Notes under the pieces: generated by a model
What the model was told of the DNA's origin: nothing
The model's database searches: none
The model's input: the letters and a program-made list of their open reading frames with translations, nothing else
Translations under genes and position numbers: made by a program
Shown here: positions 4,245 to 32,000 of the stretch, piece by piece
Numbering within the stretch: position 1 is the stretch's first letter
How the letters are laid out: each line of letters starts with the position of its first letter
Assembly: GCF_000400465.1 (NCBI RefSeq)
Contig: NW_008806289.1
Span: 210,001-242,000, forward strand
Length of the DNA stretch: 32,000 nt
Direction: 5' to 3'
Source: Wallemia ichthyophaga EXF-994
Lineage: Eukaryota; Fungi; Basidiomycota

Positions 4245-6530
4245 TCAGTAGGGGAGAGTGCCGAGTGGCCGAAGTGTAGGTGCTGAGCAAGTGCCGTCGA
4301 GATTGATGCCATGTTCATCAGCCACGAGGTAGTAATCTTCATTAGCCACAGCGTAGTACGAGTTGCGCAAGTCTCTCGACAACTCTTCGTCAGCGTAATT
4401 GAATGGTGACAACATTAATGCTGACTTGGCTTCTATGAAGAGCGTATTTGGTACATCTTCAGCTCGTGGAACGTGTCTGAATCCAACCGATGCCCAGAGA
4501 GTGAGATCCTTCTGCCTGATGGATTCGTCATCTTGGTAGAACTTGGTGAAATCGACTGGTGGCTTCTTTGGTAAGACGGCGTTGTAGTATGATGAGCAAC
4601 TGCGTTCGTTGTCCTTGGTAACAGTGACAAAGGCATGATGATCGGCAAATTTGGCGTTCTGGTCCATCTTTTCGCCATCAACAATGTTGTGGATGACTGA
4701 ACGTGGCATGAGACGGTAGGAGCGCGGGTATCCATAGCTGTTGGTTGAGTCTTGGTTACCAATTAGCCAAAATTTGTCACTGTTACCGTTCCAGTCAATC
4801 ACAGCCTCCTTCTCCTTCTCCAAGACGCTTGTGTTGATCTTTTTCTGCTTCAGTGGCGGATCATCATCGTCCATCCAGTTGAACCTATCCTCACTAACCA
4901 CGATGTCCCTTCTCTCGACACTGTTGCTCTCGCCAGCGACATCAAGATCAATCTTGAAGGTGATAACGTGGTCGTGGATGCTGCCAGAGGATGTGGCGCT
5001 GACTCTTGTGTCATATGAATCGCCATTCGGATTATAATATGTTGTTTGAAGGTAACCCGAAGCATCAACTTCAATCTCAATCGAGCCTTCTGGGTAGAGT
5101 GTGAAGCTGATCAAGTAGTCGTAGTTGCCGACAGTGTAGATACTTCTCACTTCGAACGCAACACCCCTGGTAGCGCCTGCGTCTGTAGACTGGTAGTGTC
5201 TTGATATAGGCTTCTGAAGATCGCGTTCAAACATGCAAATGGTGTCGTTCAAGATGCGACCGGCACCGTAGTCGTAGAAGTTGACGTCCATGTATGTCGC
5301 TTCGTGTGGGCAGTCGTAGTTCCTGACGAGCGGTGTAATACCAGTGGCCATTCCAAAGCCTCGGTCGAGATATGCCGTGTAGGCTTGCATAGGATCAGCG
5401 CCGCCGTAATTGGAGACGGCATCTTGGAGTGAGATCTCATACGCAACTCTCTCGCCCTTGAACTTGACGTCGAAGAGCATCAGACCTTGCTCTGGGCTGT
5501 AGGAGAGGTAGAAGGACCAGTCCATCCAGGTGATGTATCTCTCATCTCTGTCGACACGATACCTCAAGCCACTTGGGGAGTAGGTAATCGGAGCGGGAAG
5601 CTCTTCGAGGTCGCGAGCAGTCCCCTTCACGGAGCGGAGAGCCCAGTCAGTGTTGGTGCTGTTGAGTTGGGGCGATGGCTCGAGTTTCCCCGCGTTGAAA
5701 TCCTCATTGAACGCGTCAGTAGATGACCACTTCTGGTTGTTGTAGACGAGCTTGCGGAGCTTCCATTGAGAAATGTCTTGGTTGGAGAAATCGAACTGCG
5801 CAAACAAGCCAGTGTATGCGAACCACATGGCAGAGGTGTCGTAGGCCAGCATCAGCTCGACCCATGGGTGTCTGTACGATCCATCGCCGTTGTTGGGGAG
5901 TAAACCGGTATCGTAGTTGCTAAGTGACCAAGGCACGCCCAGCAAATCATTGAGAGCATCAGAGATGGCAGTGAATGTTTCTGAAATGACATTGGTGCGC
6001 TCACGGTCCTCGCCGGGATGGGATGGTTTTGCATTCCAAGGTATCTCACCGTTGTGGTAGATTTTCTCGGCGAGATTCTCGATTCTCGTGTCGGAAGAGA
6101 CGGGCAGCGGGCCAACAAGGAGAGTCTTGACAATCGGAGGATCGTCCAAGCCAGAAACGACGTGTGCCTTGGCCATGCGATCGGGGAGTGGACCATCTTG
6201 GTCGAGGTAGTAAATGGCGTCTTCCTTGGTTGGGTGCCACAGCTCGATCTGCGTGGGCAATGTTAGTTGAGCCACAATCCCCACAATCGCACCCACCGAG
6301 TCGATGTAGTTGCCGTCTAAGGCGGCTTCGTCCATATCGGTGAGGTTGAGGGATTGCTCTGGGTCCTTGAGCCAGGCAGCGATATCCGCAAGCTCAGAAT
6401 TAGACAGTTCAAGGAAAGGGTTCGACTTGGGCGCTGTTGTTGTTGGGGCCGTTGAGCAGTTTGGCTGCGCGATGGCTATAGCGACCACTGCGACCACTGC
6501 TAGGGCAAAAACACCACCAAAAGCTTTCAT
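4245..6530 (-). CDS. Secreted copper amine oxidase (TPQ-dependent primary-amine oxidase, AOC/fungal lysyl-oxidase type), about 745 aa
   Basis: Signal peptide MKAFGGVFALAVVAVVAIAIA. TPQ consensus TVGNYDY. Cu ligands IHDHV and RHVPRAEDVP. One in-frame 48-nt intron at 6249-6296 (GTGGGT..CTAAC..CAG) that the ORF track reads through. Confidence 0.95.
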   Translation of the reverse strand: MKAFGGVFALAVVAVVAIAIAQPNCSTAPTTTAPKSNPFLELSNSELADIAAWLKDPEQSLNLTDMDEAALDGNYIDSVGAIVGIVAQLTLPTQIELWHPTKEDAIYYLDQDGPLPDRMAKAHVVSGLDDPPIVKTLLVGPLPVSSDTRIENLAEKIYHNGEIPWNAKPSHPGEDRERTNVISETFTAISDALNDLLGVPWSLSNYDTGLLPNNGDGSYRHPWVELMLAYDTSAMWFAYTGLFAQFDFSNQDISQWKLRKLVYNNQKWSSTDAFNEDFNAGKLEPSPQLNSTNTDWALRSVKGTARDLEELPAPITYSPSGLRYRVDRDERYITWMDWSFYLSYSPEQGLMLFDVKFKGERVAYEISLQDAVSNYGGADPMQAYTAYLDRGFGMATGITPLVRNYDCPHEATYMDVNFYDYGAGRILNDTICMFERDLQKPISRHYQSTDAGATRGVAFEVRSIYTVGNYDYLISFTLYPEGSIEIEVDASGYLQTTYYNPNGDSYDTRVSATSSGSIHDHVITFKIDLDVAGESNSVERRDIVVSEDRFNWMDDDDPPLKQKKINTSVLEKEKEAVIDWNGNSDKFWLIGNQDSTNSYGYPRSYRLMPRSVIHNIVDGEKMDQNAKFADHHAFVTVTKDNERSCSSYYNAVLPKKPPVDFTKFYQDDESIRQKDLTLWASVGFRHVPRAEDVPNTLFIEAKSALMLSPFNYADEELSRDLRNSYYAVANEDYYLVADEHGINLDGTCSAPTLRPLGTLPY

Positions 6531-6885
6531 CGTCTTTATAAAGGTTATAAACAAGATGCAGGCCTCTTATAGGATACTGGGCAGTCTGGGCTGACGCCTT
6601 GCTGTGCCTGAACACAAGGGGTTGTTTGTAGGATAAACATGGAGATCAATTGAATGTTTATAATTCTAGGTTTATCTGGGTTTATGTTGCTTGCTGGTGT
6701 TGCTGGATGTGCTATAGTGTTATGGTGTTTTGCTTTAGATTGAATCGATATTGGTGTTATTGGGTGGAGCACGACCAGAAAAACATTAAAGAATTAAATT
6801 AAAAGACTGCGCTATTAAAATATTTACATTCACCTCCACTTGACCTATCCATCTGACACATCATCTCACGCTTACACTTACCATC
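6531..6885. promoter_or_regulatory. Shared divergent promoter region of amine oxidase and ALDH
   Basis: 355 nt between the two divergent ATGs. GATAA cores at 6632-6636 (+) and 6672-6677 (-, AGATAA). Confidence 0.55.
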
Positions 6886-8482
6886 ATGAGCACCACATTC
6901 CAATACGATTTCGCAGCAAACCACAAGAATTCAGATTTCCAAGGCAAGGTCAACTTCCCCACCGGAGTCTTCATCAACAACGAATTCTCCGCCGGATCCA
7001 CCGGCAAGTCGATTGACATTGTCAACCCATCAACTTCCAAGGTCATCACACAGATCAGCGAGGGCACCGCCGACGACGTCGACAGAGCTGTGCGTGCTGC
7101 CCGCGATGCACACGACAACCGTTGGGGCACCACGGTTCACGGTTCCGAGCGTGGTCGCCTTCTTATCCGCCTTGCCGATCTGATGGAGGAGCACGCAGAC
7201 GAGTTGGCTGCTCTTGAGTAAGTGGCCGCTGCCTTGCAATCCACCACTCACCCGCTCAGGTGTCTTGACAACGGCAAACCTTTCAAGTTCGCAAGAAGTT
7301 TCGATATCCCAGAGGCTGCTGCCAACTTTAGATACTTTGGTGGCTGGGCAGACAAGGTCCAAGGCCACACCATGGAAGTCGGCGACGACAAGTTGGCCTA
7401 CACGAGATATGAGGCTATGGGTGTCTGTGGATCTGTGATTCCTTGGAACTTCCCATTGCTTATGGCTGTGAGTTTGGCTGTAAAATGCTTATCGGCTATA
7501 CTCACAATCCATTCTTTAGTCCTGGAAGCTGGCCCCTGCTATCGCCACTGGCAACGCTGTCGTCATCAAGCCATCTGAGATCACTCCCCTCACAGCTCTT
7601 CGTTTGGCTTCTCTTATCAAGGAGGCAGGCTTCCCAGCAGGTGTCGTAAACATTGTCGTTGGTTATGGCCAGACTGTCGGCTCTGCCATCATCGATCACC
7701 CAAACATCGACAAGGTCGCTTTCACTGGCTCAACTGCAGTCGGTAAACTCGTCATGAAGGCTGCTGCAAACAACGTCAAGAATGTCACCCTCGAATTAGG
7801 TGGAAAGTCTCCATCTGTCGTGTTTGAAGATGCTAATCTCGCAAACGCTGTCCAGCAGACAGCATTTGGTATTTGGTTCAACTCTGCTCAATGTTGCTGC
7901 GCAGGATCACGTATCCTTGTCGAGGAGTCAATCTACGATGAGTTTGTTAAGGGTTTCAAAGATTTCACAAACACATTGAAGATCGGTGATCCATTCGACA
8001 ATGAGACATTCTTCGGTCCAGTTGTCTCACAGGCCCAACAAAGCCGTGTTAATGGCTTTATCGAAAGCGGCAAGAAGGATGCCAAGGTGATTGAATGCGG
8101 TGGTGAACCATCCAACCTTGGTGGATACTTTGTCAAACCAAACATCTTCCTTGATGCTCCTGCCGACTGTGAAATTCAACGTCAAGAGATTTTCGGTCCA
8201 GCAGTGACTATTTCAAAGTTCTCAAAGAATGATGACGTTGTCAAGCTCGCAAACGACACAGACTATGGTCTCGCAGCATCAGTATTCACTGACAACTTCA
8301 GCAAAGCTCACAAGACTGCTCACGCTATAAAAGCAGGTACAGTATGGATCAACCAACACAACGTATTAACCAAGAATGTTCCATTCGGTGGTTACAAGCA
8401 ATCAGGATTGGGTCGTGAGATGGGATCTGAGGTGTTGAAGAACTATGTCCAAAGCAAGTCTGTCTTTGCTCAATTCACGTAA
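6886..8482 (+). CDS. NAD(P)+-dependent aldehyde dehydrogenase (ALDH1/2-like, probably cytosolic)
   Basis: Introns 7218-7259 and 7468-7519 join PWNFPLLMASWKLAPA, KPSE, FTGSTAVG, LELGGKSP (catalytic Glu), QCCCAGSR (catalytic Cys), EIFGP and PFGGYKQSGLGRE. No obvious presequence or PTS1. Confidence 0.95.
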
Positions 8483-8749
8483 TGTTCTCGCTTGATATCG
8501 CTTTAACGATTTCTTGGTTTGATGCCAATGCTTCAAGTAATGAATGAACGATTTGTAAATGACTTTATACATGGAATTGATTTTAAGATTATTGTTGGTC
8601 AGGCTGACTTTCCAAGGTGTTCGATTTGTGTGGCAATTGAAGGAAAAGGAGTTTGAGTCAAGTGCACAGCTTTAGCATCTTCTTGCTAACAAATACTGGG
8701 TTTATTAAATAAAAATTTCCGTTTTAAGACCATTTATTAAATTGATCAT

Positions 8750-9420
8750 ATGGATTTCAACCAGTCATGCGACACCTCTCTCCAGAACGACCAACACGAA
8801 CATCTCGTGAGTATTGTTTACACCAAACAAAACTGTTGTTGAATTGTTGCTCTCTTCTATCATAACCAGGCTCAGCATTGATTCGACGCCACTCTCGTAG
8901 TCGCTCCTATCATGTCTGTTCACTCGTTTGATAGAATCTTCAAAGGAGCGTGTGCAGCCTAAGGCAACAAGTTTAAATGCGTGGATGATTCGTAAGTACT
9001 CGCTGTGACTCTCTTCATCAGTGACTCCAACTTTTCAAACATCAGCTTTCAACCAGATCTCCACTATTCCTGGCCGTGTCCCTTTACGGTTTTCACCGCC
9101 ACTATAGTCTTTCTAAGAGAGAGTCTCGTCGATCCCTGATTTTGAACAAACGATTCAGGTTTGGTTGGAGGTTTGAGTCATAAGTCCTGGCTTGGAACAG
9201 TCACTTGGAAGATATCTCACAAGTTATCTAAGTAGCTTGCAAAAGCAGTCGCTTCTGTATCCACCGCGTCATGTCGTGTGCTAAACAGCACGACATAAGG
9301 GCTTCCACCCCACGATCCCTTTCTCAGTAGAGAAAAGTCTCTTAGCATGTCCAAGGACTGTTGGGAGACACGTGGGCCACTTCTCTGTGACTCTGACTTC
9401 TTTTGTTGTCAAAGTTTCAA
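8750..9420. other. Unresolved locus with splice signals (small multi-exon gene or ncRNA?)
   Basis: Strong + strand donors GTGAGT (8807) and GTAAGT (8992) with pyrimidine-rich CAG acceptors (8869, 9056). No recognisable product could be assembled. Confidence 0.25.
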
Positions 9421-9545
9421 AGAAGTGGCTTACGTTTTTGCTTTTGTAATTTATAATGATTTGAACGAAGAATTTGACCAAGGTGATACAAAGACAATGT
9501 GTAATGAGAGCTGTTGGAATTACTTTATTCAATACCGTCACCTCA

Positions 9546-10262
9546 ATGGTGAGTGATTTCGTCGGTATCAAGCAATCAGCTCAATTGAAATAACTACAGT
9601 CTGTAACCCTGCACACTTCTCTAGGAGATCTCAAAGTGAGTACACGTTATTACAGTGATCGATGTCACCAACGTTATCTCAAGATAGAAGTCTTCTGTGA
9701 AGCTGTACCGCAAGCGTCTGAGGTGAGTGAGAGTGCAATTCCATCTATAAATCACCACTCACACGGTAATAGAACTTTTTAGCCTTGTGCGCTAGTGGAT
9801 ATTATGATGGTTGCAAGTTTCATCGGTTAGTTGAATTTGCGATTAATTGGGTGGCTAATCGATGACAATAGTAATATTAAAGGATTCATGACTCAAACTG
9901 GTGACCCTACTGGCAGCGGTAAAGGCGGTCAGTCGATTTACGGAGAGCCATATCCCGATGAGATAAGGTCAACATTCAAGTTTAACAATAGAGGTTTAGT
10001 TGCGTTTGCTAATAGTGGAAGTGATAGTAATAGATCGCAATTCTTCATTACATACGCTGCAACGCCCCATCTTAACAGTAAATACACTATCTTTGGCAGA
10101 GTAATTGATGGCGCTGAGAATGGCACTCTTGGCGCAATTGAAAGGGTGCCCTCCGGTACCCAGAAGGAAGGTTTCAGACCAAAGCACGATATTTTACTTA
10201 AAGAAATTACAATACACTCTAATCCAATAGCTAGTAAGATAGTTAGAGACAATTACGTGTAA
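9546..10262 (+). CDS. CYP10: Cyclophilin-type PPIase, PPIL3/Cyp10 family
   Basis: ATG-only first exon and four short introns give MSVTLHTSLGDLKIEVFCEAVPQASENFLALCASGYYDGCKFHRNIKGFMTQTGDPTGSGKGG...ANSG...SQFFITY..PHL. Confidence 0.92.
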
Positions 10263-10296
10263 AATTGCGTGTAAATATACAAGAAGATCAATATTT

Positions 10297-10326
10297 ATTC
10301 ACTATTCACTATTCACTATTCACTAT
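10297..10326. repeat. Tandem heptamer (ATTCACT)x4
   Basis: Read directly: attcact attcact attcact attcact at. It overlaps the stop codon of the bromodomain gene. Confidence 0.9.
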
Positions 10327-12028
10327 CCTCCAGCTGACAAGAAAACTCTGTACATCTCAGTCGACTCTATTTTATCGTCACTTTTCGTGTACCTCACAAA
10401 TACTTCCATCACGTTCTTCCTTTGCAATGTAACTAACCAGTTCTGCTCCCCTGGTTGACACGTTGTAGTTGATCCAAATTGTATTATTGAACCATTGAAC
10501 CTCAACAGAATATCCCTACCTTCGGTTTTTATATCTTCCTTGTCGTACGTTTTCACCTCAACATTGATACCAGGTGGGAATGGAATCGTGAGAGTATGGT
10601 CAACGAAATATCTAAGATCGACGAATGATCTCCCAATCTTCATCGCCATAAGTGAGGGCTGCATCTTTAACATTTTATTTTCATGTGTAGAGTCCGCCCT
10701 TGCCTCAATAGGTAAAATAAGTTCATCTTTCTCGTCCTTCTTCTGTGTTTCAATTTTAGACGGTGTAGCAGATGGTGATTGTTGATGAGATTTTAGCAGT
10801 GGTTGTGATGCAAAATTTTCATTTGTTGGATCAATTGATGAGCGCTCAGATTGATACTGACTGATATCAAAATTAGGTGCAGCTTTAAGAGGAAATGATG
10901 GTCTTGTTTTGGGTGGTGGTTTAACGTCAACATATGTAGAAGGTATGCGTTGACCATCTGGTGTCATTACTATTCTGAACAGCTTCTCGTCCAGCATGTC
11001 ATCGGGTACGAACATTTTTAGCAGTTCGTACATTATGTCTTTCAATTCTCTAGCGTCGTTGTAGATTTCCGAGCCTTCTTCATTGAAATGCATCGCATTG
11101 TTGAACATGAGCTCCATATCTTCGACTATTTCACTGATTGTGGTGTAAAATTTCTCAGCCATGTTCTTGTTAATGATATCGAACGACATTGGGTTGTCAA
11201 TCACCTGCTTTTGTCAGCCGTCGGATGAGATAGTAAACCTAATCAACTCACATCGTAGTAGTAAGGCACCTCCTTCTCTTCAGGTAGAATATTGAAGGGC
11301 TCTGATAGTAATTTACCAGTATCTTTATCACGATGGGCCATCAATTTGTCAATAACTTTCTTCACAATCTTGTTTATACCCTTGGGTCTACCTCTTTTAG
11401 ATTTCTGTTGAGGGAAGAAGAAGCCACTCTCATTAGGATCAGGACCACCGTCAACGCTACCATATTCACAGAACTTTTGGAACCACTCTTTAACTTTCTT
11501 AAGCATAAATTTAGCATCAACTACGATTTGACTGTTCTTTGCGTTGTATTTCTTTGCATTAGCGAAGCAGAGTTCAAAGTCATTTTTCATTTCAAGCATG
11601 CTGACGTATTCCTTGTTATTGATTCTTGCTTCAATTTGTTGAAAAGATATTGGCTTCTTAATAACGGTATAATAATCGGGGAGAAATTCACCATTAGGAA
11701 GGTTAATGAATTCTGTTGATAATAATCTACCACTATCATCCTTCAAGTCTTTCATTTTATTATATAGATTTAACGATTGATCCAATTCGTTTTGTATATT
11801 ATTTACTTGATAGCTGTTCTTATCGGTATTTGTAACTCTTCTGCGCTTTCTAGAAGTTGAATTGCTCGCAGGTTCAATATCCAAATCATCTGCCAAGTAC
11901 TCATCTGAGTGACCTTCATCTTTGGCTTTAGATTCTAAAGGGACAGGTTCATCGATGTATTCATCATCAGCTTCACTTTTAGCTTCGTCTTTAATGTCCT
12001 CCTTGATATCCTTCACATCGTCTGCCAT
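10323..12028 (-). CDS. Tandem double-bromodomain protein, Rsc4/polybromo-like (RSC chromatin remodeller)
   Basis: Bromodomain 1: FINLP...LPDYYTVIKKPISFQQI...FANAKKYN..NSQI. Bromodomain 2: PFNILP...PYYYD|VIDNPMSFDII...MFNNAMHFNEEGSEIY. Intron 11205-11251. Probable start MADDVKD at 12028. Confidence 0.8.
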
Positions 12029-12449: not shown

Positions 12450-14073
12450 ATGAGTAATGACTTGATTATTCTATTCGTTTTAATTTTGGCATGCCTATTA
12501 GCCTACAGACTAACCACAAACAAATCAAACGTACACAAATTCACGCGTATTAACAATAGCCACCTAATCTTTGGCAACTTCTTAGAGGCTTTAGGAATGT
12601 TTGACAAAAAATTCCCAGAATGGACTGAAATATACGGTCCAACTTTCATATTCGAAACTTTATTTCGCAAACAACATGTACACACGATCGACCCACTCGC
12701 TCTGGATCACATCCTCAGAAAGCGCAGTTACTCATATCCGAAAACGGTTGGTTTGAGGAAGTCTCTTGATTCAGTGATTGGTTTCGGTGGAATGATATCA
12801 TCTGAAGGCGATTATCATAAACGCCTAAAGAAGTTGATGACTAGCCCACTGAATAGCCCCACCAATTTGGAATCATTCATCCCTCTGATGAAGAGTAAGG
12901 GAGATCAGCTAGTCAAAGTTATCGAAAAGCTCATCGGTAATGAGAAGATTAAAGAATTAGATATTCTGCCGCTAATCGAAGAACTGGCTGGCGATATTGT
13001 TGGTCTTACATTATTCAGACTAGACCTCGGCTTATTACCAAACACTAATGATATCCATGCTAAGAATACCTCAAATATCGCTAAAGCTGTTGAACACCTC
13101 TCAGACAGCAAAGGTGACGCTAGTCTGGCATTCTTTTTACAATTCGTTATCCCAATAACTGGTTCATTGCCAACATCTACACAAAGACTGAATAAAAAGC
13201 ACCTTAGTGAATTTAAAAAGACTGCTGAAATACTCTATCACAACAAACTTGAAAGTTTGCAAGAATCAAAGGAGATTGGTGAAGATTTGAACACAGAAAA
13301 CGATATCCTGACACTCCTCATCGATGCAAACTTGAAGCAGGTGAAAAGTGAACAATTTACTAAGGATCAGATTATATCACAAATCACTACGTTTATTGTG
13401 AGTGTGTGTTGACCGCCTATCATTGCTAAATGTCATCCTTCTCCAGATAGCAGGCATAGATACAACTACCGTCACGCTCAATTGGATATTATACGCTTTA
13501 TCTACCAATCAATCAACACAATCAAAGTTAAGACATGAGATTGAGACTGCCAACATCAAACATGATCCAAGCCCAACACTCAATAGCATCAACTCCTTAG
13601 ATTATTTAGATGCAGTAGTCAAAGAAGGACTGAGATTGTATGCGGCAGTTCCAAACACGATTAGAGAGGCGAGTCAGGATGATGTCATCCCACTCAAGTA
13701 CCCGATCAAAGATAGAAAGACAGGAGAACTGATGGATAAGATAATAGTAAACAAGGGTCAGCAGATACTGATTCCTATACATTCCTACAACAAGTCATCG
13801 TACAACTTCGATGACGGATACGTTTTCAAACCAGAGAGGTGGATTGAGAATCCCAATCAGCCAATTTTGACATTCTTGGATGGTACTAGAATGTGTATCG
13901 GTGCCAAATTGGCTTTATTAGAGATTAAACTTACGCTTATACACTTGATCACTTCTTTTCACTTCGATTTCGATGATGCTTATGAAGTAGAGGCAAGAGG
14001 TAGAGTCACACTCCATCCATCTGTAAAGGGTCTGAAAAATCCTAAAATGTTATTAAATTTGAATAAATTATAA
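12450..14073 (+). CDS. Cytochrome P450 (copy 1)
   Basis: N-terminal TM anchor. I-helix TTFI|IAGIDTT across intron 13398-13446. K-helix EGLR, KPERW, heme motif FLDGTRMCIG. Confidence 0.93.
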
Positions 14074-14097
14074 TTATAAGACTCTTATAACACAACT

Positions 14098-15723
14098 ATG
14101 ATGATCTGGTGGCTTGGGAGTCTAGTTATAGCCGTGATAATAGCTTTATACATAAGAAGATATCCTACAAATGTCAACAATATCCCCAGAATCCCGTTCT
14201 CAAGTTATTTCTTCGGTCATGTCAAGCATCTGTTTGATAAATGCTTTGGCGATTGTCTGATTGGCTGGACGAATGAATATGGATACACTTACGTGTTAGA
14301 GTCTATTCTCAGAGAACCTTTATTACACACTATCGATAAGTCAGCACTTAATCACGTTCTCCAGAGGAACTCGCACAATTATACCAAACCCCAGGCAGTC
14401 CAAAACGTGATGCGGAAAGTATTCGGACGTGATGGTATATTTATCTCAGAAGGTTCTCAGCACAAAAAGCTACGCAAATTAATGACGCCGTCTTTCTTCA
14501 CTGCTAGCAATCTCCAGAACTTCATTCCAATCATTCAACAGAAGTCTGCGGAATTGGTTGATGTTTTCGGCAAAAAAGATACTGTGCAGTTTGACGTGCT
14601 ACAAGACTTTAAAAATGTCTCTACTGATATTGTCGGCATGATTGGTCAGTGTGATTGACATTATATACGTCATACTGATCGACAATCAGGCTTCGGTTTC
14701 TCATTCGATCTGTTAAACCCTATCAAAAAACGTGATCAGCGTCAAATAGAGTTGCATCAAGCGTTACAACACGTTATCGCATCTGCTGGTTCATCATCTC
14801 TATTCACGTCCTTATCACTATTCATATCTTCAATGAAGATAATTCCAACAAAAAGTTTTAAGCTTTTGAAAGAAGCTATGGCTTTGTTCGAGCAAGTTGG
14901 TTTGGATCTTATGAAAGGGAGGAAAGAAGTAGAGAAAGAGAATGAGGAGATCGGTGAAGGCTCATTCCAAGGCAAAGATGTGCTATCCCTACTTATGAAA
15001 TCGAATCTCAGACCTGAACTCAACCCAAGCGATAGACTGAGTACTTCAGAGGTCGTTTCGCAGATTGCAACTTTTTTGGTCGCCGGTACTGATACAACGT
15101 CGAACGCTATGGCTTATATGCTTCACTCGTTAGCTTCAAATAAACGAGTGCAAGATAAATTACGCAGCGAGATAATCGAGCACGCACTAAATATGAATGA
15201 ATCAACCTCGCTTAATGACGTCAATTCACTTCCATATCTCGATATGGTGATTAAGGAGACACTCAGACTGAACGCACCTGTTCCCCTCACTATCAGACAA
15301 GCTACAAATGCTGATGTCATACCCCTAGCTCATCCAGTGAAGGATACAAAGACAGGTGATATGATTTCACAGATAGTGGTTAAGCCTGGACAGAAGGTCG
15401 TGATCGGAATACACTCATACAACAAATCTAACTTGATGTGGGACAAGCCGCTCGAGTATATTCCAGAGCGGTACGAAAATGACACCCACAGCCCACCTTA
15501 TCTATCTTTCATCGACGGTCAGAGAGTGTGTATCGGATATAAAGTAGCGATACTTGAAATGAAGATCACTGCTATCAACTTAATCAAGAACTTTACCTTC
15601 TCACTCCCTGATCCACCGCACAACATCGTGAAAACCGGTAGAATGGTTCATACACCGTGGATTCGCGAGCGCATGGATCTAGGCACTAGGCTAGAGCTGC
15701 AAGTGAATGAATACAAGCTCTAG
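14098..15723 (+). CDS. Cytochrome P450 (copy 2)
   Basis: TM anchor, intron 14645-14689, AGTDTT, ETLR, IPERY, FIDGQRVCIG. Confidence 0.93.
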
Positions 15724-17926: not shown

Positions 17927-19554
17927 ATGATGTGGTTGCTTGGGAGTGTCGTTGCAGCTGCACTGATTGCCTTATATCTACGCAGATATCCTACGAATGT
18001 CAGTCATATCCCTAGAATCCCGTTCTCAAGTTATTTCTTCGGTCATGTCAAAGATATTTCTGATGAATGCTTCGGGGAACGTATGGTTAGCTGGACAAAT
18101 GAATATGGACACACTTACGTGATAGATTCCTTTTTAAGAGAGCCCTATATCCACACTATGGATAAGTCAGCACTTTACCATATTTTCCAGACGAACTCAC
18201 AAAATTACACCAAACCTAAGGCTTTCCGAGACGTAATGAGAACGATGATAGGTCGTGATGGCATACTCATCACTGAAGGCGCTCAGCACAAGAAGTTACG
18301 CAAATTAATGACACCGTCTTTCTTCACTGCTGGAAATTTACAGAACTTCATTCCAATCATTCAACAAAAAGCTACAGAATTGGTTGATGTTTTCAACAAT
18401 AAGGAGAAAGTGACATGTGATGTGCTGGACCCTTTGATGAATTTTTCTACTGATGTTGTCGGTTTAATTGGTGGGTGTGATACTAATGTTTTGTATGTTA
18501 TACTGATCGGCCCGACCCAGGTTTCGGTTTCTCATTCGATATGTTAAGCCCTGAAAGGAGACGTGAACAGCGTCAATCAGACCTGCAACAGGCGGTAGAA
18601 AGGATATTTTCTTCGGCTGGTCCTTCTTCGCTCTTAGCGTCAGTTTCATTTTTCATGTCCTCAATAATGATAATTCCAACAAAGGCTTTAAAACTTATAA
18701 AACAGGCCATGAGCTTGCTCGAGCACGTTGGGTTGGATCTAATGAAGGAAAAGGAAGAGGCAGAAAAAGAGAATGAAGAGATTGGTGAAGATTCATTCCA
18801 GGGTAAAGATATACTGTCTTTGCTAATGAAATCAAATCTCAATCCTGATCTCAATCCAAGTGATAAAATGAGTACTTCGGAGGTCGTTTCGCAGATTTCT
18901 ACTTTCCTGCTTGCTGGACTTGATACAACGTCAACTACGATGACGTTTATGCTCCACTCGTTAGCTTCGAATAAACGAGTGCAAGATAAATTGCGTAGCG
19001 AGATAATCGAACACGCACTAAATATGAATGAATCAACCTCGCTTAATGACGTCAATGCACTTCCTTATCTGGATTTGGTGATAAAAGAGGCACTCAGACT
19101 TAACGGACCTGTGCCTCTTGTTTTCAGGCAAGCTACAAAAGCCGATGTCATACCCTTAGCAAATCCAGTGAAGGATACAAAGACTGGTGATATGATTTCA
19201 CAGATAGTGATCAAGCCTGGTCAGAAGGTAGCGATCGGAATTCACTCATACAACAAATCTAACTTGATGTGGGACAAACCACTAGAGTTCATTCCAGAGC
19301 GGTACGAAAATGACACCCACAGCCCACCTAATCTATCTTTCATCGACGGCCAGAGAGTGTGCATTGGATTCAAATTAGCTTCGCTTCAAATGAAAATTTC
19401 TACCATTAACCTGATTAAAAACTTTACATTCTCGCTCCCTGATCCACCACAGACCCTCGTGAGAGCGGGTAGAGTGGTACATAAGCCTTACATTGGCGAG
19501 CGCAAGTATTTAGGTGCTAGATTAGAATTGCAAGTAAATGAGTACAAGCTTTAA
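17927..19554 (+). CDS. Cytochrome P450 (copy 3, close paralogue of copy 2)
   Basis: Intron 18471-18520 is at the same position as in copy 2. AGLDTT, EALR, IPERY, FIDGQRVCIG. Confidence 0.93.
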
Positions 19555-25149: not shown

Positions 25150-27443
25150 TTACATTGATTGCTTGATAATTTCCAAACGATTTTGAATCCTATCTAATGC
25201 AACGTTTAATTGATCAATCTCCATTTGTGCGTTTGATTGTGTGTGCGTGTGATGTTTGAAAGCATCATGTACAACACTTCTAATCGTGTCTACTAATAGT
25301 GGTTCGTGATTTTGACTTAATGTTGATATTGGCTTGAATGGCGTTAAATTGAAATACGTGTAAGCGTTTGATATGATTAAAATCAAGATTAAAACATAAA
25401 GTGTTTTCGTAAATGATGGTGAAATCGTCAAAGCTCCTAGAGCTGAAAATATTGTCATCGTTAGTCTGACTACTTTATTGAATAACTCGAATGTACCATC
25501 TAATAAATGCTGTAAGATAGTTGGCAGCATTGAAGTATGTTCCATTGTACTCTTTAAATGACTATCCTCGACTTTAGCTTTTTCAGCTAATTCCTTTGAT
25601 CCTTCTTTTTCTTCACGAGCTTTCTCAGGGGTTATTGCATTAGTATCCGTAAATTCATTTGCATGCTCTTCAATATATTTACGCATTGCTGACTCTAAAG
25701 CGCGATGATAAGATTTCTGACCTTCGATTGCTGATCTTTCAATAACACCTGAAAAATAGTGAGTCGAGTAGATTTTCAAACATCCAGGACCCACCCTTTA
25801 AAAAACTTCTACCAGTCCATTCAACCTTTGTGGAGACAATAACATGAGAATTGTTGTTAGTTGCCCATGAAATTGCTGTTCTAGTACGAACAACAAAAGA
25901 ATTACCAGAAGGTACCTCTGGAGTACGGGTGGACGTGAGTACAAGAACATGATCATCAAAATCGACATGCTCATTTTCATCATCCAATACACATTTCGTT
26001 GACTTTGGACCGACACCTACTGTCAAAGGTTTGATGTAAGTGATTGTTCTACTAAGTTTAGAGCTATCAGCTTTGGGTTGCCAGTCAGATATTTGAATTT
26101 CTGTCAGGTCTTGAGTCGACATAAAGTCTTTAATAAAGAAGCTTGTAAACATAAGATTGTAAAGCTTTTCAGGTGTTGCTGGGAGTGTAGTATCCATTGC
26201 AACCTCTGGGAAGTTTACAGAAGGGTCAATCTTTGTAGGCCTGTGAATAGTTGGTGGAGGTCTTTGTGTCGCTTGTCTAGGTACAGAAGGACGAGCATTT
26301 CTAGATTGCTTTCCACCTTTCTCTTTGTGTTTACGACTGGATTTGCTTAATGAAGTTGAGGCTGATGTGGCAGAGCTTTCTGCAGATGTATCAGAGTCTT
26401 CTTGCGAGCTTCCTTGATTAATTAGATGGGCGCTTTCGTGAGACTCTTCCGATACTGGTATGGTGGGGTGAGACAACCTCCAGATGTTTAATATCACATC
26501 GTAAACAGTGTCTCTGGATAAAAACGAAGCGAAGACATACTATTGCGCGACAGTTAGCGTTGTCTCATCTTCATAATTGTAAGCCAACCTTTGCGCGCAA
26601 TGTAGAAATTTGGATTGCGTTTGGAATGACAAACGCAGTCATCTTCTTCTCGATTGCAACCATTTCAGAGAAAGGAACAGCAAACTGTATCTTATTAAAA
26701 GATGAATAGAGATGAGTGAAACTACCTACGCTGGTAACCCAACCAAATATGTTTGCGTTAAAGGAGATGTGATTTTCTGATATGTAAAGACGCCCTTGAA
26801 TAAGTATTTCACGCTGTAAAGCACAACCATAATCTTCAATGAGGTAATCTTGCTCAGGAATATTAGGAAAGAGTTGGTGAAAGTCAGCATTTCTGCGTGA
26901 ACTTGCGACAGCGAAACCGGTGATACCTTCGCCGAAGTAATCATTTAACTCTAAAGACTGGCTGTCAACATCTGAAGAATGTCTATCATTTAAAGCCAAG
27001 CCAATCTGAGGATCTGTTTCATTTAAAGAGTTACGGGAGGTATCGATTGAGTTCCTGGTTGAAGGGCTAATTTGAGATTTATCAGGAGTAGAATGACCGC
27101 TAGGAGAAACATCACGTAAAGAATCAGGAATATGATTAGAATCTGAGTAATTCCTTTTACGTGTATTGTTTGATCTAAGTGATGAATTTGACTGCGACTT
27201 TTTGTGATTGAATTCATCAAGGCTGAGGCTGCCATCACCGATACTCAAAGGTAAAGATCTCCTTTCAAGCGTAGGTGTCTGAGTATCATCATCCAGCTGA
27301 GGCTGCTGCTTATCAGGCATATCAAGCTTTGGTAGATCATCATATTGAGATAAAGGCTGATTCATGACCATAAGATTATGCCTATTATTCGTAGATTCCT
27401 CTTTGTTCTCCTTTTTCTTATATTTGTTTAGAATTGAACTCAT
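25150..27443 (-). CDS. GRAM + VASt (StART-like) domain membrane-contact sterol transporter (Lam/Ltc/Ysp2 family)
   Basis: GRAM: RNADFHQLFP...DYGCALQREILIQGRLYISENHISFNANIFGW. VASt: STRTPEVPSGNSFVVRTR...VEWTGRSFLK. C-terminal TM segment and coiled coil. Three introns (one is 26685-26729). Confidence 0.88.
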
Positions 27444-27810
27444 CCTTCTTGATAATCAACTTTGAAGAATGTTAAGCTTGAGATTTTCAAGTCTGGGGGC
27501 TGTAAATATTTTACAGGATTTGCTGGGCGGTATATTAAGGGCTGTACCGTGAGTATTACCCAGCACGCATGCTACTACCCACTCAATTCCCATCCAGCAA
27601 GAAGAAAGTATCTCACTCGAGAAAATCCATGCGCTCTGCGAATAAAGGTTTAAAGGACAAGCAAAGCTTAGTACATTGCCCCGCTTCTGGTCTTCCAAAG
27701 CCTGCTCATCACCTCTCACAAGATCTTTACAACGAACTTAAGCGGAATTGGAAATCATTTCAGAAGTAAATTTCAATTATAAATGCTATTTGTCTCAATT
27801 ACATTAGTTC

Positions 27811-29333
27811 TTAAGCGTTAAGCTTTGGTGCTGTTGTTCCACGTGCTAATCCATCTTCACCACCGTAAACAACCTTTCCACTCTCTTGAGCAATCTCATC
27901 TTCGATTCTGAGTAAACGGTTGTACTTGGCAAGACGCTCTGTACGACATGGTGCACCTGACTTGATTTGTCCTGTTTGAAGTGCAACAACAAGGTCTGCA
28001 ATGAATGTGTCTTCGGTTTCACCTGAACGGTGTGAAACCATTACACCCCATCCAGAGCTTTGTGAGAGTTGTGCTGCTTCAATTGACTCTGAAACGGTAC
28101 CAATTTGGTTTACCTTAAGGAGTAATCCGTTACATGCCTTCTTTTCTACTGCTGTCTTGATACGAAGTGGGTTTGTAACTGTTAAATCATCTCCAACAAT
28201 TTGAATTGGTGAGTTTTGAGTAAAGTGTGACCATGCTTCCCAGTCATCTTGGTCAAATGGATCTTCAATTGAAACAATTGGGTATTTCTGTACGTATCCA
28301 AGGTAAAGGTCTGCAAGTTCCTTACCTGATAACCATTTAGACTTGTCTGAGTTGTCGTTCTTGAAATCCAAGTCATATTTGCCCTCCTTGTAGAATTCTG
28401 ATGAAGCAACATCAAGTGCAATTGAAACCTTACCAGTGTAACCTGCTTTGTCAATAGCAGTAACGAGCAAGTCAAGTGCTTCATCAGCACCATTAACATT
28501 TGGTGCGAATCCACCTTCATCACCAACGTTGGTAGCATCAATACCGTATTTAGCCTTGATAACCTTCTTAAGTGATTGGTATGCTTCTGAGCCAATTCTC
28601 ATTGCTTCAGTGAATGAGCTAGCGCCAGTTGGGAGTATCATGAACTCTTGGAAAGCAAGAGCGTTACCAGCGTGTGATCCACCGTTGATAACGTTGAATG
28701 CTGGAGTTGGGAGAACGAATGGAGCCTTAACACCAGTGAGTGTAGCGAGGTGCTTGTAAAGTGGAACACCCTTCTCAAGAGCAGCAGCTGATGCAGCAGC
28801 CATTGAAACACCGAGGATGGCGTTAGCACCGAGCTTGTTCTTGTTTTGAGTACCATCAAGCTTAAGAAGAAATTCATCAACTTGATTTTGGTTGGCTGCG
28901 TCAATGTTTGCCTTTACAAGCTCTGGGGCAATAATGTCGTTGACGTTGCTAACTGCCTTGGTTACACCCTTTCCGTTGTAAGCATCACCGCCATCACGGA
29001 GTTCATTGGCTTCGTAAACACTGAATAGGCGTTAGTAATTCGCTGCTTCAACGCTTCCCACTAACCCAGTTGAAGCACCTTTATATGTGTAAGCCAAGAA
29101 ATTCTAATCAACAAATAAAAAACGTACCGGATGGGACAATAGCAGTAGCCTGTTTGCCACCAGCAGTGATAACAACTTCAACGGTTGGCTATTTGTCTAT
29201 TAGACTGAGTGCATGTCTTTGTGCTCGACTTACACCGCCTCTTGAGTCGAAGACTTGACGTGCATATACCTGAGATATTCTGTAAGCTATGTTTATACGT
29301 ATCTTACAGCTTTCTTACTTTTTCAATTGCCAT
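27811..29333 (-). CDS. ENO1: Enolase (phosphopyruvate hydratase)
   Basis: MAIEK|[11 protein letters not shown]..., PSG|ASTG|[44 protein letters not shown]. Four short 5' introns. Confidence 0.96.
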
Positions 29334-29673
29334 TTTAATAGATCCTGGTTGTGTCGAAAAAAGAAACACCTACGAATCAATCTACTTGAATTTGGTAATC
29401 AAAATTTTGCTTGCTCATGTTCCAAATAGCCAGCATAACTATACCATACAACCTCTTTATCCGCCTTCGTCGACATTAAGTTATCTCAGTCATGAGGGAA
29501 ACAATCCGGCGGTATCTCTTTTGCGCAGATGGAGTTGATGTGATTCTTAAGCGATACTTGCGCAATCCTTAAATTCAAATTAATTTCATTTTTAAAGAAA
29601 AATAACATGTATGAATGTTTGGCGGTATATGTACTCATCTTGAAAAGGTATTTTAATGAGTGTCTGTACAGAG

Positions 29674-32000
29674 CTAATTTGAAGATCTGAATAAAGAGAA
29701 TAAGTCCTTACGTTCCCTGGTTGGTGATTTCAATGTTTTATCAACATTCTCATCATTTTCTGTATTCACACTTGACTGATATTCACCATCCGATATAGCC
29801 TTTTCTTTCTTTGGTGTTGCTGGCATACGACTTTGTTTTGGCCGTAGCGATTGATTTTTGTTTGGCGACGTTGGTCTCGACTTAGACAATATTCCTCTTT
29901 TCTTCCGAAGGTTTAATGTACTTGAAATCGCTTCACCCACTGTCTTTTTAGCAGGCGGTGTTGACTCCCTTCGAGTTGATGGTGGCGAATCTGTATCTGT
30001 CGTTGCTGATGATGCATCTTCGTGTGTTTGCACTGGTATTTTAACTTGTCTATTCGAATTATTGATTGTTGAATTTTGACGACGTAATATCAGCTTGTAT
30101 TTATCTGTAACTCCTCTAGCAAACAGTGTTGATGGATTTATTCTGCGTCCATTCGGTGCCATTGGTGTATCTGATTCTACTAAGTCCCATTCATCATCGT
30201 CGTTGTCATCTGTTGCGTCTTCATCGTCTGCAATAGATGAGCTTGAAGACGAGCTAACAAGCATTGGTCTATCAAATGCTAGCACACCTGATTTCTCACG
30301 TCTGCGCTTTCTCAAACCATTTGGATGATGTGTGACAATTGATTCACTTTCCTCTACGTTGTCAGACATTGACGGTGGTACTTTTGATAGTGATTTTGGT
30401 TCCTTATGCAGCTCTGTCTCAAATCGCTGGTTGATAATGGCATCCTCGGTTGTATCTTTGTTCACATTATCGACACTTGTAACTTTCTCCAATTTTTCGA
30501 CCACCTCAGCTTCATCTCCAGTTTTCTCATTTTCATTAAAGACATCATCATGCTCCTCTTCATACATGACAGAATGACCATCCTCGTTTAGACGCCTGTA
30601 ACTGTACTTGTCAAAGAGATCTTCATTGTTGGCGTCAGCATCTCGAATAGCTTCGTCCGCGATCGCAGCACGCTCTGGGTCTATGTTGCTAGCATTTAAA
30701 TCATCATCATCAATAATTGGCTCCATGTCGAGGAATGTCTCATCAAAGTTTTGAGTATCGAGATGATCTTCTGGGTTAGTTGGTGGTATGTAAGGTGGGA
30801 TATAGCGTTTCGCGGATATATGATTCCAATCGAGCATTCCTGTCATGCTCATTAATACTTATTTGAAGTGATTGACTTATCTCACCAAAGTATGGATGAC
30901 GTTTAATACGTGGTTCACATAGACGTAATTCTGGGTTCTTTTGGAGAAGCTGGTGTGTGTAAGTAATTGTCTAAAATGCAAAACTTAAACTTACCCCTCT
31001 GAGTAAAGACTTGGTATCTTGATCCATATATCTTTCATCGCCAAAATTTAAGTCGTCGTGAAGTACACGAACATACATATCTGAGTGATTTGAAGCCCAA
31101 AATGGGGTCTGGAAACTTGTCAGTATGGGCGATGCTGGTTTGCATCCACGTACTATACCAGCAAGCATTTCGTAAAGCATGGTTCCGAGTGACCACCAGT
31201 CAACTTCATATGAATAGGATAAACCTTGAATAACCTCTGGTGCTAAGTACTCAGCTGTACCGCAGAAGCTACTAGTGGTATCTTTAGGATCGACATTGGG
31301 CGTTGTTGAACTGACTGTCGTCATCCATTCCGGTAAAGCCATGATTGGGCCTTCAGGTTTGGGAAATTGTTTCGATAGTCCAAAGTCAGTCAATATAATA
31401 TGTCCATCAGCTGCGATCAAAATATTTTCAGGTTTTAGATCGCGATAGATGACACCAGCAGCGTGAAGACCTTCAACACCTTCAACAATCTCAGCAGCAT
31501 AGAATCTTGCTCTGTCACGACCTAGACGGCCCCATCTAGACAGTTGAGTAGCTAAGTCACCTCCCGGATGGAAGTCCATGGCAAGGAATAAGTCACTCTC
31601 ATCATGAAATGAGTAGTGCAATTGAACGATGAAAGGATTTAAAACATCTCTAGTCATACGCTTTAAGACTGTTTGTTCAGTGAGGGTATGTAGCAACTCT
31701 TGGTGTGCCAAAACATGTCTTTTGTGAATGGCCTTCATCGCAAAGTATCCACCGTTGGTTTTGTGTCTGACCAAAAGAACTTTACCTGCGCAGCCTTTGC
31801 CTAAAACTCTCTTCATTTCAAAATCTTCAATCTTAACCTTGCGATGCTTCTTACGAACGACCTTGCGCGTAGTCGTTTCGTTTGTATCGTTCTGCAGTGA
31901 TTGGAGATTAGGTTCAGATTGAAATAGTTCATGAGATTTTGCTAGGCTTTGGTTGAAGGAAGCGGACTTGATAACTTCATCAGAATCTACTGGTTTCTCA
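29674..32000 (-). CDS. AGC-family Ser/Thr protein kinase (Akt/Ypk/Sch9-like), 5' end outside the window
   Basis: GKGCAGKV, AMK, IYRDLKPEN, DFGLSK, SFCGTAEYLAPE, DWWSLG. AGC C-terminal region YIPPYIPP...NFDETF...FDKYSY. Introns 31109-31153, 30950-30994 and 30840-30885. Confidence 0.9.

Follow-up and report, generated by a model that had tools for sequence, protein, structure and literature searches.

In Escherichia coli K-12, the genes for a periplasmic copper amine oxidase that carries the cofactor trihydroxyphenylalanine quinone (TPQ), TynA, and for a cytosolic aldehyde dehydrogenase (ALDH), FeaB, which is a phenylacetaldehyde dehydrogenase, lie next to each other and to feaR, the gene for an AraC-type activator (feaR, minus strand; feaB, plus strand; tynA, minus strand), and FeaR drives both feaB and tynA. 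Small amines are also oxidised by copper amine oxidases of the PPLO type. The substrate channels of PPLO (Pichia pastoris lysyl oxidase) and ANAO (Aspergillus nidulans amine oxidase) are wide enough to accommodate whole peptides (PMC3382800). In Fusarium graminearum, one study describes conversion of tryptamine to indole-3-acetaldehyde and then auxin by copper amine oxidases followed by ALDH (PMC13490858). Here we describe genes for a copper amine oxidase and an ALDH that lie side by side in the halophilic basidiomycete Wallemia ichthyophaga. The stretch analysed, hereafter the window, comprises 32,000 nt of strain EXF-994 (contig NW_008806289.1, positions 210,001 to 242,000 of the forward strand); coordinates are those of the window unless another locus is named.

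The copper amine oxidase gene (4245-6530, minus strand) and the ALDH gene (6886-8482, plus strand) are arranged head to head, exactly 355 nt apart from ATG to ATG (6531-6885), and the promoters and 5′ untranslated regions of both genes presumably lie in this spacer. Both genes are already in the public annotation, as EOQ99764.1 ('Membrane primary amine oxidase') and EOQ99765.1 ('Aldehyde dehydrogenase'), and the proteins predicted from the window are 99% (oxidase) and 100% (ALDH) identical to deposited proteins of W. ichthyophaga. An initial annotation of the window had recognised its eukaryotic origin, which proves to be fungal, had placed both genes and the spacer correctly, and had cited the E. 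coli genes, rightly given their adjacency in K-12, as a precedent for a co-regulated amine-catabolism module. We confirm what it observed; its interpretation is partly supported. In the literature searched we found no paper on linkage of oxidase and ALDH genes in fungi or on a bidirectional promoter for such a pair, and none tying Wallemia amine oxidases to a function, the matches merely placing Wallemia in amine-rich fermented foods.

We favour, with a probability of roughly 0.6, the explanation that these are two intact, separately regulated genes, encoding a secretory PPLO/ANAO-type oxidase and a generalist cytosolic ALDH, and not a module with a shared promoter. The first alternative is a dedicated, co-regulated amine-catabolism module like tynA-feaB. 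In such a module, the 355-nt spacer would be a bidirectional promoter from which amines or nitrogen limitation induce both genes; the secreted oxidase would release ammonium and an aldehyde, and catabolism of that aldehyde would require this particular ALDH. The second is that the oxidase, as PPLO and ANAO can, acts on lysines or N-termini of proteins, cross-linking or modifying cell-wall or secreted proteins, or serves mainly as an extracellular source of H2O2. The ALDH would then never encounter the product of the oxidase, and there would be no functional significance in their being neighbours.

Results

Expression of the two genes is uncoupled across two salinities

We compared expression of the two genes using published RNA-seq of the type strain grown at 10% and 30% NaCl (PMC3849046, Additional files 5 and 7), the sole data set available. 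Levels of the oxidase gene (GME3831_g, identified by its printed sequence) fell about five-fold, from 70.2 reads per kilobase per million mapped reads (RPKM) at 10% NaCl to 14.4 at 30% (log2 change of -2.29, scored as differentially expressed), whereas levels of the ALDH gene (GME3832_g) were flat, at 951.7 and 963.7 RPKM, respectively (log2 change of 0.018, P=0.135; PMC3849046). ALDH levels exceeded those of the oxidase 14- to 67-fold across the two salinities, and we estimate that the ALDH gene is within the top few percent of genes by RPKM at 30% NaCl. The initial annotation had called the pair co-regulated, and had itself named uncorrelated expression as a result that would speak against this. 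At these two salinities, in an amine-free medium, expression of the two genes is not correlated, which argues against a dedicated module.

In the published list of genes with reduced expression at 30% NaCl, the stretch that contains the oxidase gene also contains genes for a Ctr-type copper transporter, two ferric-chelate reductases, an NADPH oxidase and a chitinase (PMC3849046 table S6). The oxidase gene may accordingly belong with these genes in a common programme concerned with metals or the cell surface, and not be under nitrogen control. That the oxidase falls about five-fold together with cell-surface and redox genes, and not with nitrogen-catabolism genes, is also a point in favour of a protein substrate or of H2O2 production as its function.

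The spacer lacks conserved regulatory motifs

The homologous spacers, of 355 nt in W. hederae and 368 nt in W. mellicola, are poorly conserved, and the GC contents of the three Wallemia spacers are 0.39, 0.52 and 0.36. No k-mer of at least 8 nt is common to all three, although short or degenerate sites would escape this search. Only W. ichthyophaga and W. hederae have in common a weakly similar block (CTGGGCTGA / GCTGTGCCTGA), which precedes the oxidase ATG by some 40-60 nt. A megablast comparison of the spacer with E. coli genomes gave no match and is uninformative. Sites matching HGATAR, the consensus for nitrogen-regulatory GATA factors, are not enriched, with 1, 0 and 3 occurrences in the three spacers against 0.9-1.7 expected. 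As alignment and the k-mer search yielded no motif shared by all three species, we rejected the idea of shared regulatory motifs in the spacer. No transcription factor gene adjoins the pair in W. ichthyophaga. Both the spacer sequence and this lack of an adjacent regulator speak against a module with a bidirectional promoter.

The genome is compact, at 514 genes/Mb. In 21 kb of strain L007 around the locus, 5 of the 10 adjoining gene pairs are divergent, with spacers of approximately 30, 81, 235, 355 and 421 nt. The divergent arrangement and the length of the spacer are ordinary for this genome, and the locus serves as a cautionary case: at such a gene density, a short divergent spacer alone is no sign of shared regulation.

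The oxidase is an intact, probably secreted PPLO/ANAO-type enzyme

The oxidase gene comprises exon 1 (6297-6530) and exon 2 (4245-6248, including the stop codon) and encodes 745 aa, as in the reference model EOQ99764.1. The initial annotation treated the gene as a single exon and overlooked a 48-nt in-frame intron between the two (6249-6296, minus strand; GTGGGT...CTAAC...CAG). This intron is spliced out in the 745-aa reference model, which is based on RNA-seq, and the sequence printed in the expression table lacks the residues it would encode. The W. mellicola orthologue does not contain these residues either, and their position corresponds to a gap in the alignment with the structure 3pgb. 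Reading through the intron adds 16 residues, giving gene models of 761 aa; models of 760-761 aa with this read-through are found in the W. ichthyophaga population-genomics assemblies and in W. hederae.

The Pfam family Cu_amine_oxid (PF01179) matches the oxidase with E=1.3e-120 over profile positions 3-405 of 407, and the Pfam domain DUF1965 is present with a score of 28 bits against a cut-off of 23. Among solved structures, the best matches are near full length and are to the Aspergillus nidulans amine oxidase (3pgb; 378 bits, E=1e-111) and the lysyl oxidase of Pichia pastoris (1n9e, 371 bits; also 1w7c). Mammalian ectoenzymes rank next, at approximately 240-285 bits, followed by other yeast oxidases (the peroxisomal HPAO type and 3loy; 84-124 bits), bacterial oxidases (113-116 bits) and plant oxidases (within approximately 84-124 bits). 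The oxidase is nearest to 3pgb and 1n9e and possesses DUF1965, as expected of a member of the PPLO/ANAO subgroup. The same two observations are consistent with the oxidase acting on proteins, since ANAO and PPLO, the nearest relatives of known structure, have peptide-wide channels, and DUF1965 is characteristic of this subgroup; nonetheless, identity to these enzymes is modest, the nearest homologues outside Wallemia being only 31-41% identical to the oxidase.

All of the expected catalytic residues align with their counterparts in 3pgb. Tyr454 (745-aa numbering), the predicted TPQ precursor, lies in the sequence T-V-G-N-Y-D-Y and is encoded at 5121-5123, aligned with the NYDY of 3pgb. The copper-ligand histidines are His503 and His505 of an HxH motif (HDH; codons 4974-4976 and 4968-4970) and His670 in RHVPRAED (4473-4475), and the catalytic Asp373 lies in YLDRG (5364-5366), all on the minus strand. 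Judged by these residues, the protein is a TPQ copper amine oxidase with an intact active site. One of the distant homologues, from Exophiala dermatitidis (34% identical), carries the record name 'Copper amine oxidase vicK1', a hint that members of this subgroup may in some cases take part in maturation of peptide natural products. We found no neighbouring genes for peptide natural-product maturation in the window.

The N-terminus of the oxidase consists of M-K followed by 19 uncharged hydrophobic residues, the only segment of the protein with a KD19 hydrophobicity above 1.6. From this hydrophobicity we predict a signal peptide of residues 1-21, MKAFGGVFALAVVAVVAIAIA (6468-6530, minus strand), which ends in A-I-A before Q22, where the sequence continues Q-P. 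The protein contains five N-x-S/T sequons, and its C-terminus lacks a hydrophobic tail. We considered whether the oxidase is membrane-anchored, as its record name implies, a name that stems from similarity to mammalian AOC3. The corresponding hydrophobic runs in the W. mellicola orthologue (15 residues) and the W. ichthyophaga paralogue are just 15-16 residues long, and hence a cleaved signal peptide is a better fit than a membrane anchor, which we judge unlikely. The oxidase probably enters the secretory pathway.

W. ichthyophaga has a second PPLO-type oxidase (P0004; 727 aa, 40% identical), encoded on the same strand approximately 28 kb from the first and just past the right end of the window (window-equivalent positions ~34425-36752, minus strand; 8001-10328 of locus L002). 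Positions 12753-18328 of L002 match positions 32000-26425 of the window at 99.4% identity. The head-to-head neighbour of the second oxidase gene encodes a sugar-type transporter of the major facilitator superfamily (MFS), and not an ALDH.

The ALDH resembles generic cytosolic enzymes

The ALDH gene has three exons (6886-7217, 7260-7467 and 7520-8482, plus strand), which together encode an ALDH1/2-class protein of 500 aa; the two introns between them (7218-7259 and 7468-7519) are short and of the GT-AG type. After splicing, the product is 100% identical to P0121/EOQ99765.1. All three exons match the Pfam family Aldedh (PF00171), together covering profile positions 5-461 of 461. In an alignment with PDB entry 7kqv (E=1.8e-163), the catalytic residues Asn174 (codon 7447-7449), Glu272 (7793-7795) and Cys306 (7895-7897), and the GSTAVG motif, are identical; matches to human ALDH1B1 and ALDH2 and to yeast Ald4 are also strong. 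By these measures the protein is a class 1/2 enzyme with intact catalytic residues.

By eye, the ALDH has no basic presequence at its N-terminus, and its C-terminus (-AQFT) carries no peroxisomal signal. The view of the initial annotation, that a secreted oxidase is paired with a cytosolic ALDH, agrees with our analysis, in which both enzymes look intact, the oxidase is probably secretory and the ALDH lacks a targeting signal; a secreted oxidase and a cytosolic ALDH are reasonable predictions from these features.

The ALDH orthologues in Wallemia are 80-81% identical; next come the generic cytosolic ALDHs of basidiomycetes, at 52-58%. The best 120 matches listed include no second Wallemia paralogue of the ALDH. 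The W. mellicola orthologue is publicly labelled 'indole-3-acetaldehyde dehydrogenase', by similarity only. Because its nearest relatives are generic and its expression is very high and constitutive, the evidence points to a generalist ALDH of central metabolism rather than a specialised partner of the oxidase. This resemblance to generic cytosolic enzymes is a further point against a dedicated module.

The pair is conserved in three Wallemia species and not found at eight loci of other fungi

We compared the locus in three Wallemia species. In W. hederae, the pair (oxidase on the minus strand, ALDH on the plus strand) is preceded by genes for Fcf1, a GATA factor, Gar1 and PUF, and followed by those for cyclophilin, a bromodomain protein and a P450. 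W. mellicola has the same flanks, yet its ALDH gene is on the minus strand and its oxidase gene on the plus strand, i.e. there has been a clean inversion of just these two genes. In W. ichthyophaga the orientation is that of W. hederae, and the left flank differs, consisting of genes for a 195-aa protein, Snf7, SDR, QRPTase, SSB and NOL10. Neither inverted nor direct repeats that would convincingly account for the inversion were found in the vicinity of the pair. Three breakpoints flank the pair, none of which splits oxidase from ALDH. With 3′ intergenic regions of approximately 1.0-1.1 kb, the probability that three breakpoints would all miss the 355-nt spacer by chance is approximately 0.63, which is not significant, and we reject the breakpoints as evidence of selection on the pair.

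Two further features of these loci concern the surroundings of the pair. In W. hederae, a decayed, oxidase-like N-terminal fragment that includes the signal peptide region lies directly downstream of the intact oxidase (locus L008, ~6767-7120, minus strand). It carries a frameshift and an internal deletion, has no counterpart in the window or in W. mellicola, and looks like the remnant of a tandem duplication. A gene for a GATA-type zinc-finger factor lies three genes from the pair in W. hederae (L008 729-2605) and, judged by position, in W. mellicola (L001 1028-2729); in W. ichthyophaga, the flank that bears this gene in the relatives has been replaced by the rearrangement.

Outside the genus, we inspected eight loci encoding this type of oxidase, from Ceratobasidium, Trametes, Calocera, Malassezia, Vanrija, Patellaria, Atractiella and Kalaharituber. 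An ALDH gene adjoins the oxidase gene in none of the eight. Hence, W. hederae and W. mellicola show the linkage that the initial annotation expected to be conserved, and the fungal loci sampled outside Wallemia do not, which weighs against a dedicated module. Vanrija albida is the only one of the eight with an ALDH gene within 8 kb of the oxidase gene, two genes away: over approximately 8.5 kb (locus L010, 8001-16560), an oxidase gene (plus strand) is followed by a gene for a Zn-cluster-type transcription factor (minus strand) and an ALDH gene (plus strand), the factor gene being divergent from the ALDH gene. The order of these genes is reminiscent of E. coli feaR-feaB-tynA. Because the Vanrija ALDH is only ~44% identical to that of Wallemia, it belongs to a different subfamily and is non-orthologous. 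On a rough estimate that allows for about six neighbouring positions per locus across the eight loci, finding a single case like this by chance is only mildly unexpected (P ~0.1).

Other potential aldehyde-metabolising enzymes are encoded near some of these oxidases. In Atractiella (L012 11927-19298) and Malassezia (L006 3531-4349), genes for MFS transporters and an aldo-keto reductase, or for a short-chain dehydrogenase, lie next to the oxidase gene. The reductase and dehydrogenase may be alternative handlers of the aldehyde, although both families are abundant and their proximity could be due to chance.

Other genes of the window

The genes that flank the pair are of housekeeping type, as the initial annotation stated; they encode Snf7, SDR, QRPTase, SSB, NOL10, cyclophilin, a bromodomain protein, a WD40 protein, GH47 and Rad51. 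No tRNA genes or Rfam families were found in the window. Two cytochrome P450 genes (12450-15411 and 17927-19554, both plus strand) lie on either side of the WD40 gene and are approximately 80% identical over 1.3 kb of DNA. Both are missing at the syntenic locus of W. mellicola, and W. hederae has one there; the two genes look like a lineage-specific gain followed by duplication. Towards the right end of the window (25739-31816, minus strand), there are distinct reading frames for VASt, GRAM, enolase, an unknown protein and a protein kinase. In one public assembly, the equivalent region (L002 10609-16942) is represented by a single model of 1622 aa that fuses TauD, kinase and enolase domains and is probably a merged mis-annotation.

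Discussion

The data described above are consistent with two head-to-head genes that are regulated separately and whose products could nevertheless be used in sequence. We propose that the adjacency arose in or before the genus Wallemia and has been carried along since, with the oxidase expressed at a modest, condition-dependent level and the ALDH at a high, constitutive one. The oxidase would convert extracellular primary amines, and possibly peptidyl lysine, to aldehyde, NH3 and H2O2. Small aldehydes would diffuse into the cell, where the abundant ALDH would oxidise them as it would any other cellular aldehyde, and the two enzymes could hence act in series without a dedicated module. Catabolic coupling of this kind is plausible by analogy: the hand-over chemistry is sound, given that TynA and FeaB accomplish it across compartments in E. 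coli and that the F. graminearum auxin route follows the same logic.

Several observations weigh against separate regulation. According to a published Pfam census, the 4884 genes include 3 that encode Cu_amine_oxid proteins and 10 that encode Aldedh proteins, so that under random gene order the probability of some oxidase gene directly adjoining an ALDH gene is approximately 1.2% (3 x 10 combinations), a figure to be read in the knowledge that the scan from which the pair emerged offered many other chances of noticing a functionally suggestive pair. The head-to-head unit has outlasted both the two-gene inversion that distinguishes W. hederae from W. mellicola and the rearrangement of the left flank in W. 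ichthyophaga. The linked oxidase, transcription factor and ALDH genes of V. albida are an independent arrangement of the same functions. As for the expression data, they cover two salinities, apparently without replication, in a medium without amines; GME3832_g was equated with the ALDH gene by its 1503-nt coding sequence and its consecutive gene number and accession, and not by a printed sequence; and high basal expression of the ALDH does not exclude further induction.

These observations are largely those that favour a dedicated, amine-induced module. To them can be added the logic of the pathway, with adjacent feaB and tynA genes in E. coli; the successive action of copper amine oxidases and ALDH from tryptamine to auxin in F. 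graminearum (PMC13490858); and the habitat of Wallemia, which includes salted, amine-rich foods. We nevertheless consider such a module unlikely, in view of the uncoupled expression, the lack of a conserved motif or GATA enrichment in the spacer, the lack of an adjacent regulator gene, the eight loci without an adjacent ALDH gene, the different subfamily of the Vanrija ALDH and the generic character of the Wallemia ALDH. Were it a true module, it would be a small eukaryotic catabolic gene cluster that mirrors a bacterial one; it would point to nitrogen harvest from biogenic amines by an extreme halophile on salted foods, and might provide a salt-tolerant amine-degrading enzyme for use with food.

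A bolder version of the module, which we regard as distinctly doubtful, is that Wallemia evolved a divergent amine-scavenging pair co-induced from the 355-nt promoter under nitrogen limitation, and that this pair and the Vanrija genes are convergent clusters with tynA-feaB logic in basidiomycetes. In salted habitats rich in protein, the secreted oxidase, with its broad channel, would then obtain ammonium from biogenic amines or from peptides with many lysines.

Least probable, in our judgement, is that the oxidase acts on proteins or as a source of H2O2 with no connection to the ALDH, despite its structural affinities and the company it keeps at 30% NaCl: its identity to ANAO and PPLO is modest, small amines are substrates of PPLO-type enzymes too, and both retention of the pair across the genus and an adjacency of low chance probability would have to be coincidence.

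We conclude that separate regulation of an oxidase and an ALDH that may act in series is the preferred reading, and that the present evidence describes a plausible, unproven pairing of two ordinary, already-annotated enzymes. Set beside the systems outlined at the start, the Wallemia locus resembles E. coli tynA/feaB in having the genes for an exported TPQ oxidase, predicted as such in Wallemia, and a cytosolic ALDH side by side. Sequence identity between the ALDH and FeaB is 38%; for the oxidase and TynA, compared over the catalytic domain, it is 28%. The differences are in arrangement, regulation and subgroup: feaB and tynA are convergent with feaR beside them, whereas the Wallemia genes are divergent with no adjacent regulator gene; expression of the Wallemia pair is uncoupled in the available data, unlike that of a co-regulated module of the tynA-feaB type; and the Wallemia oxidase belongs to the PPLO/ANAO subgroup rather than to that of TynA.

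With PPLO (1n9e/1w7c) and ANAO (3pgb), the Wallemia oxidase shares a near full-length match, DUF1965, the TPQ motif, the copper ligands and the catalytic Asp, and its N-terminus resembles a secretion signal; the match is nonetheless a distant one, as the 31-41% identity of even its nearest homologues outside the genus indicates. We know of no ALDH neighbour for either PPLO or ANAO. The Wallemia ALDH, for its part, matches human ALDH2 and ALDH1B1, yeast Ald4 and fungal cytosolic ALDHs over its full length (E=1e-151 to 1e-163), and has both the nucleotide-binding motif GSTxxG and the catalytic residues Asn, Glu and Cys in common with the generic ALDH1/2 class. Its expression, which is constitutive and very high, fits what would be expected of a central-metabolism ALDH, and it differs from generic ALDH1/2 enzymes in having, by eye, neither an N-terminal presequence nor a C-terminal peroxisomal signal. 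The F. graminearum auxin route uses the same two-step chemistry as that proposed for the Wallemia pair, and the passages of that paper that mention 'cluster' or 'adjacent' contain no linkage of oxidase and ALDH genes (PMC13490858). Compared with these systems, the Wallemia pair is a new case, specific to the genus, in which the genes of an already known two-step pathway are neighbours.

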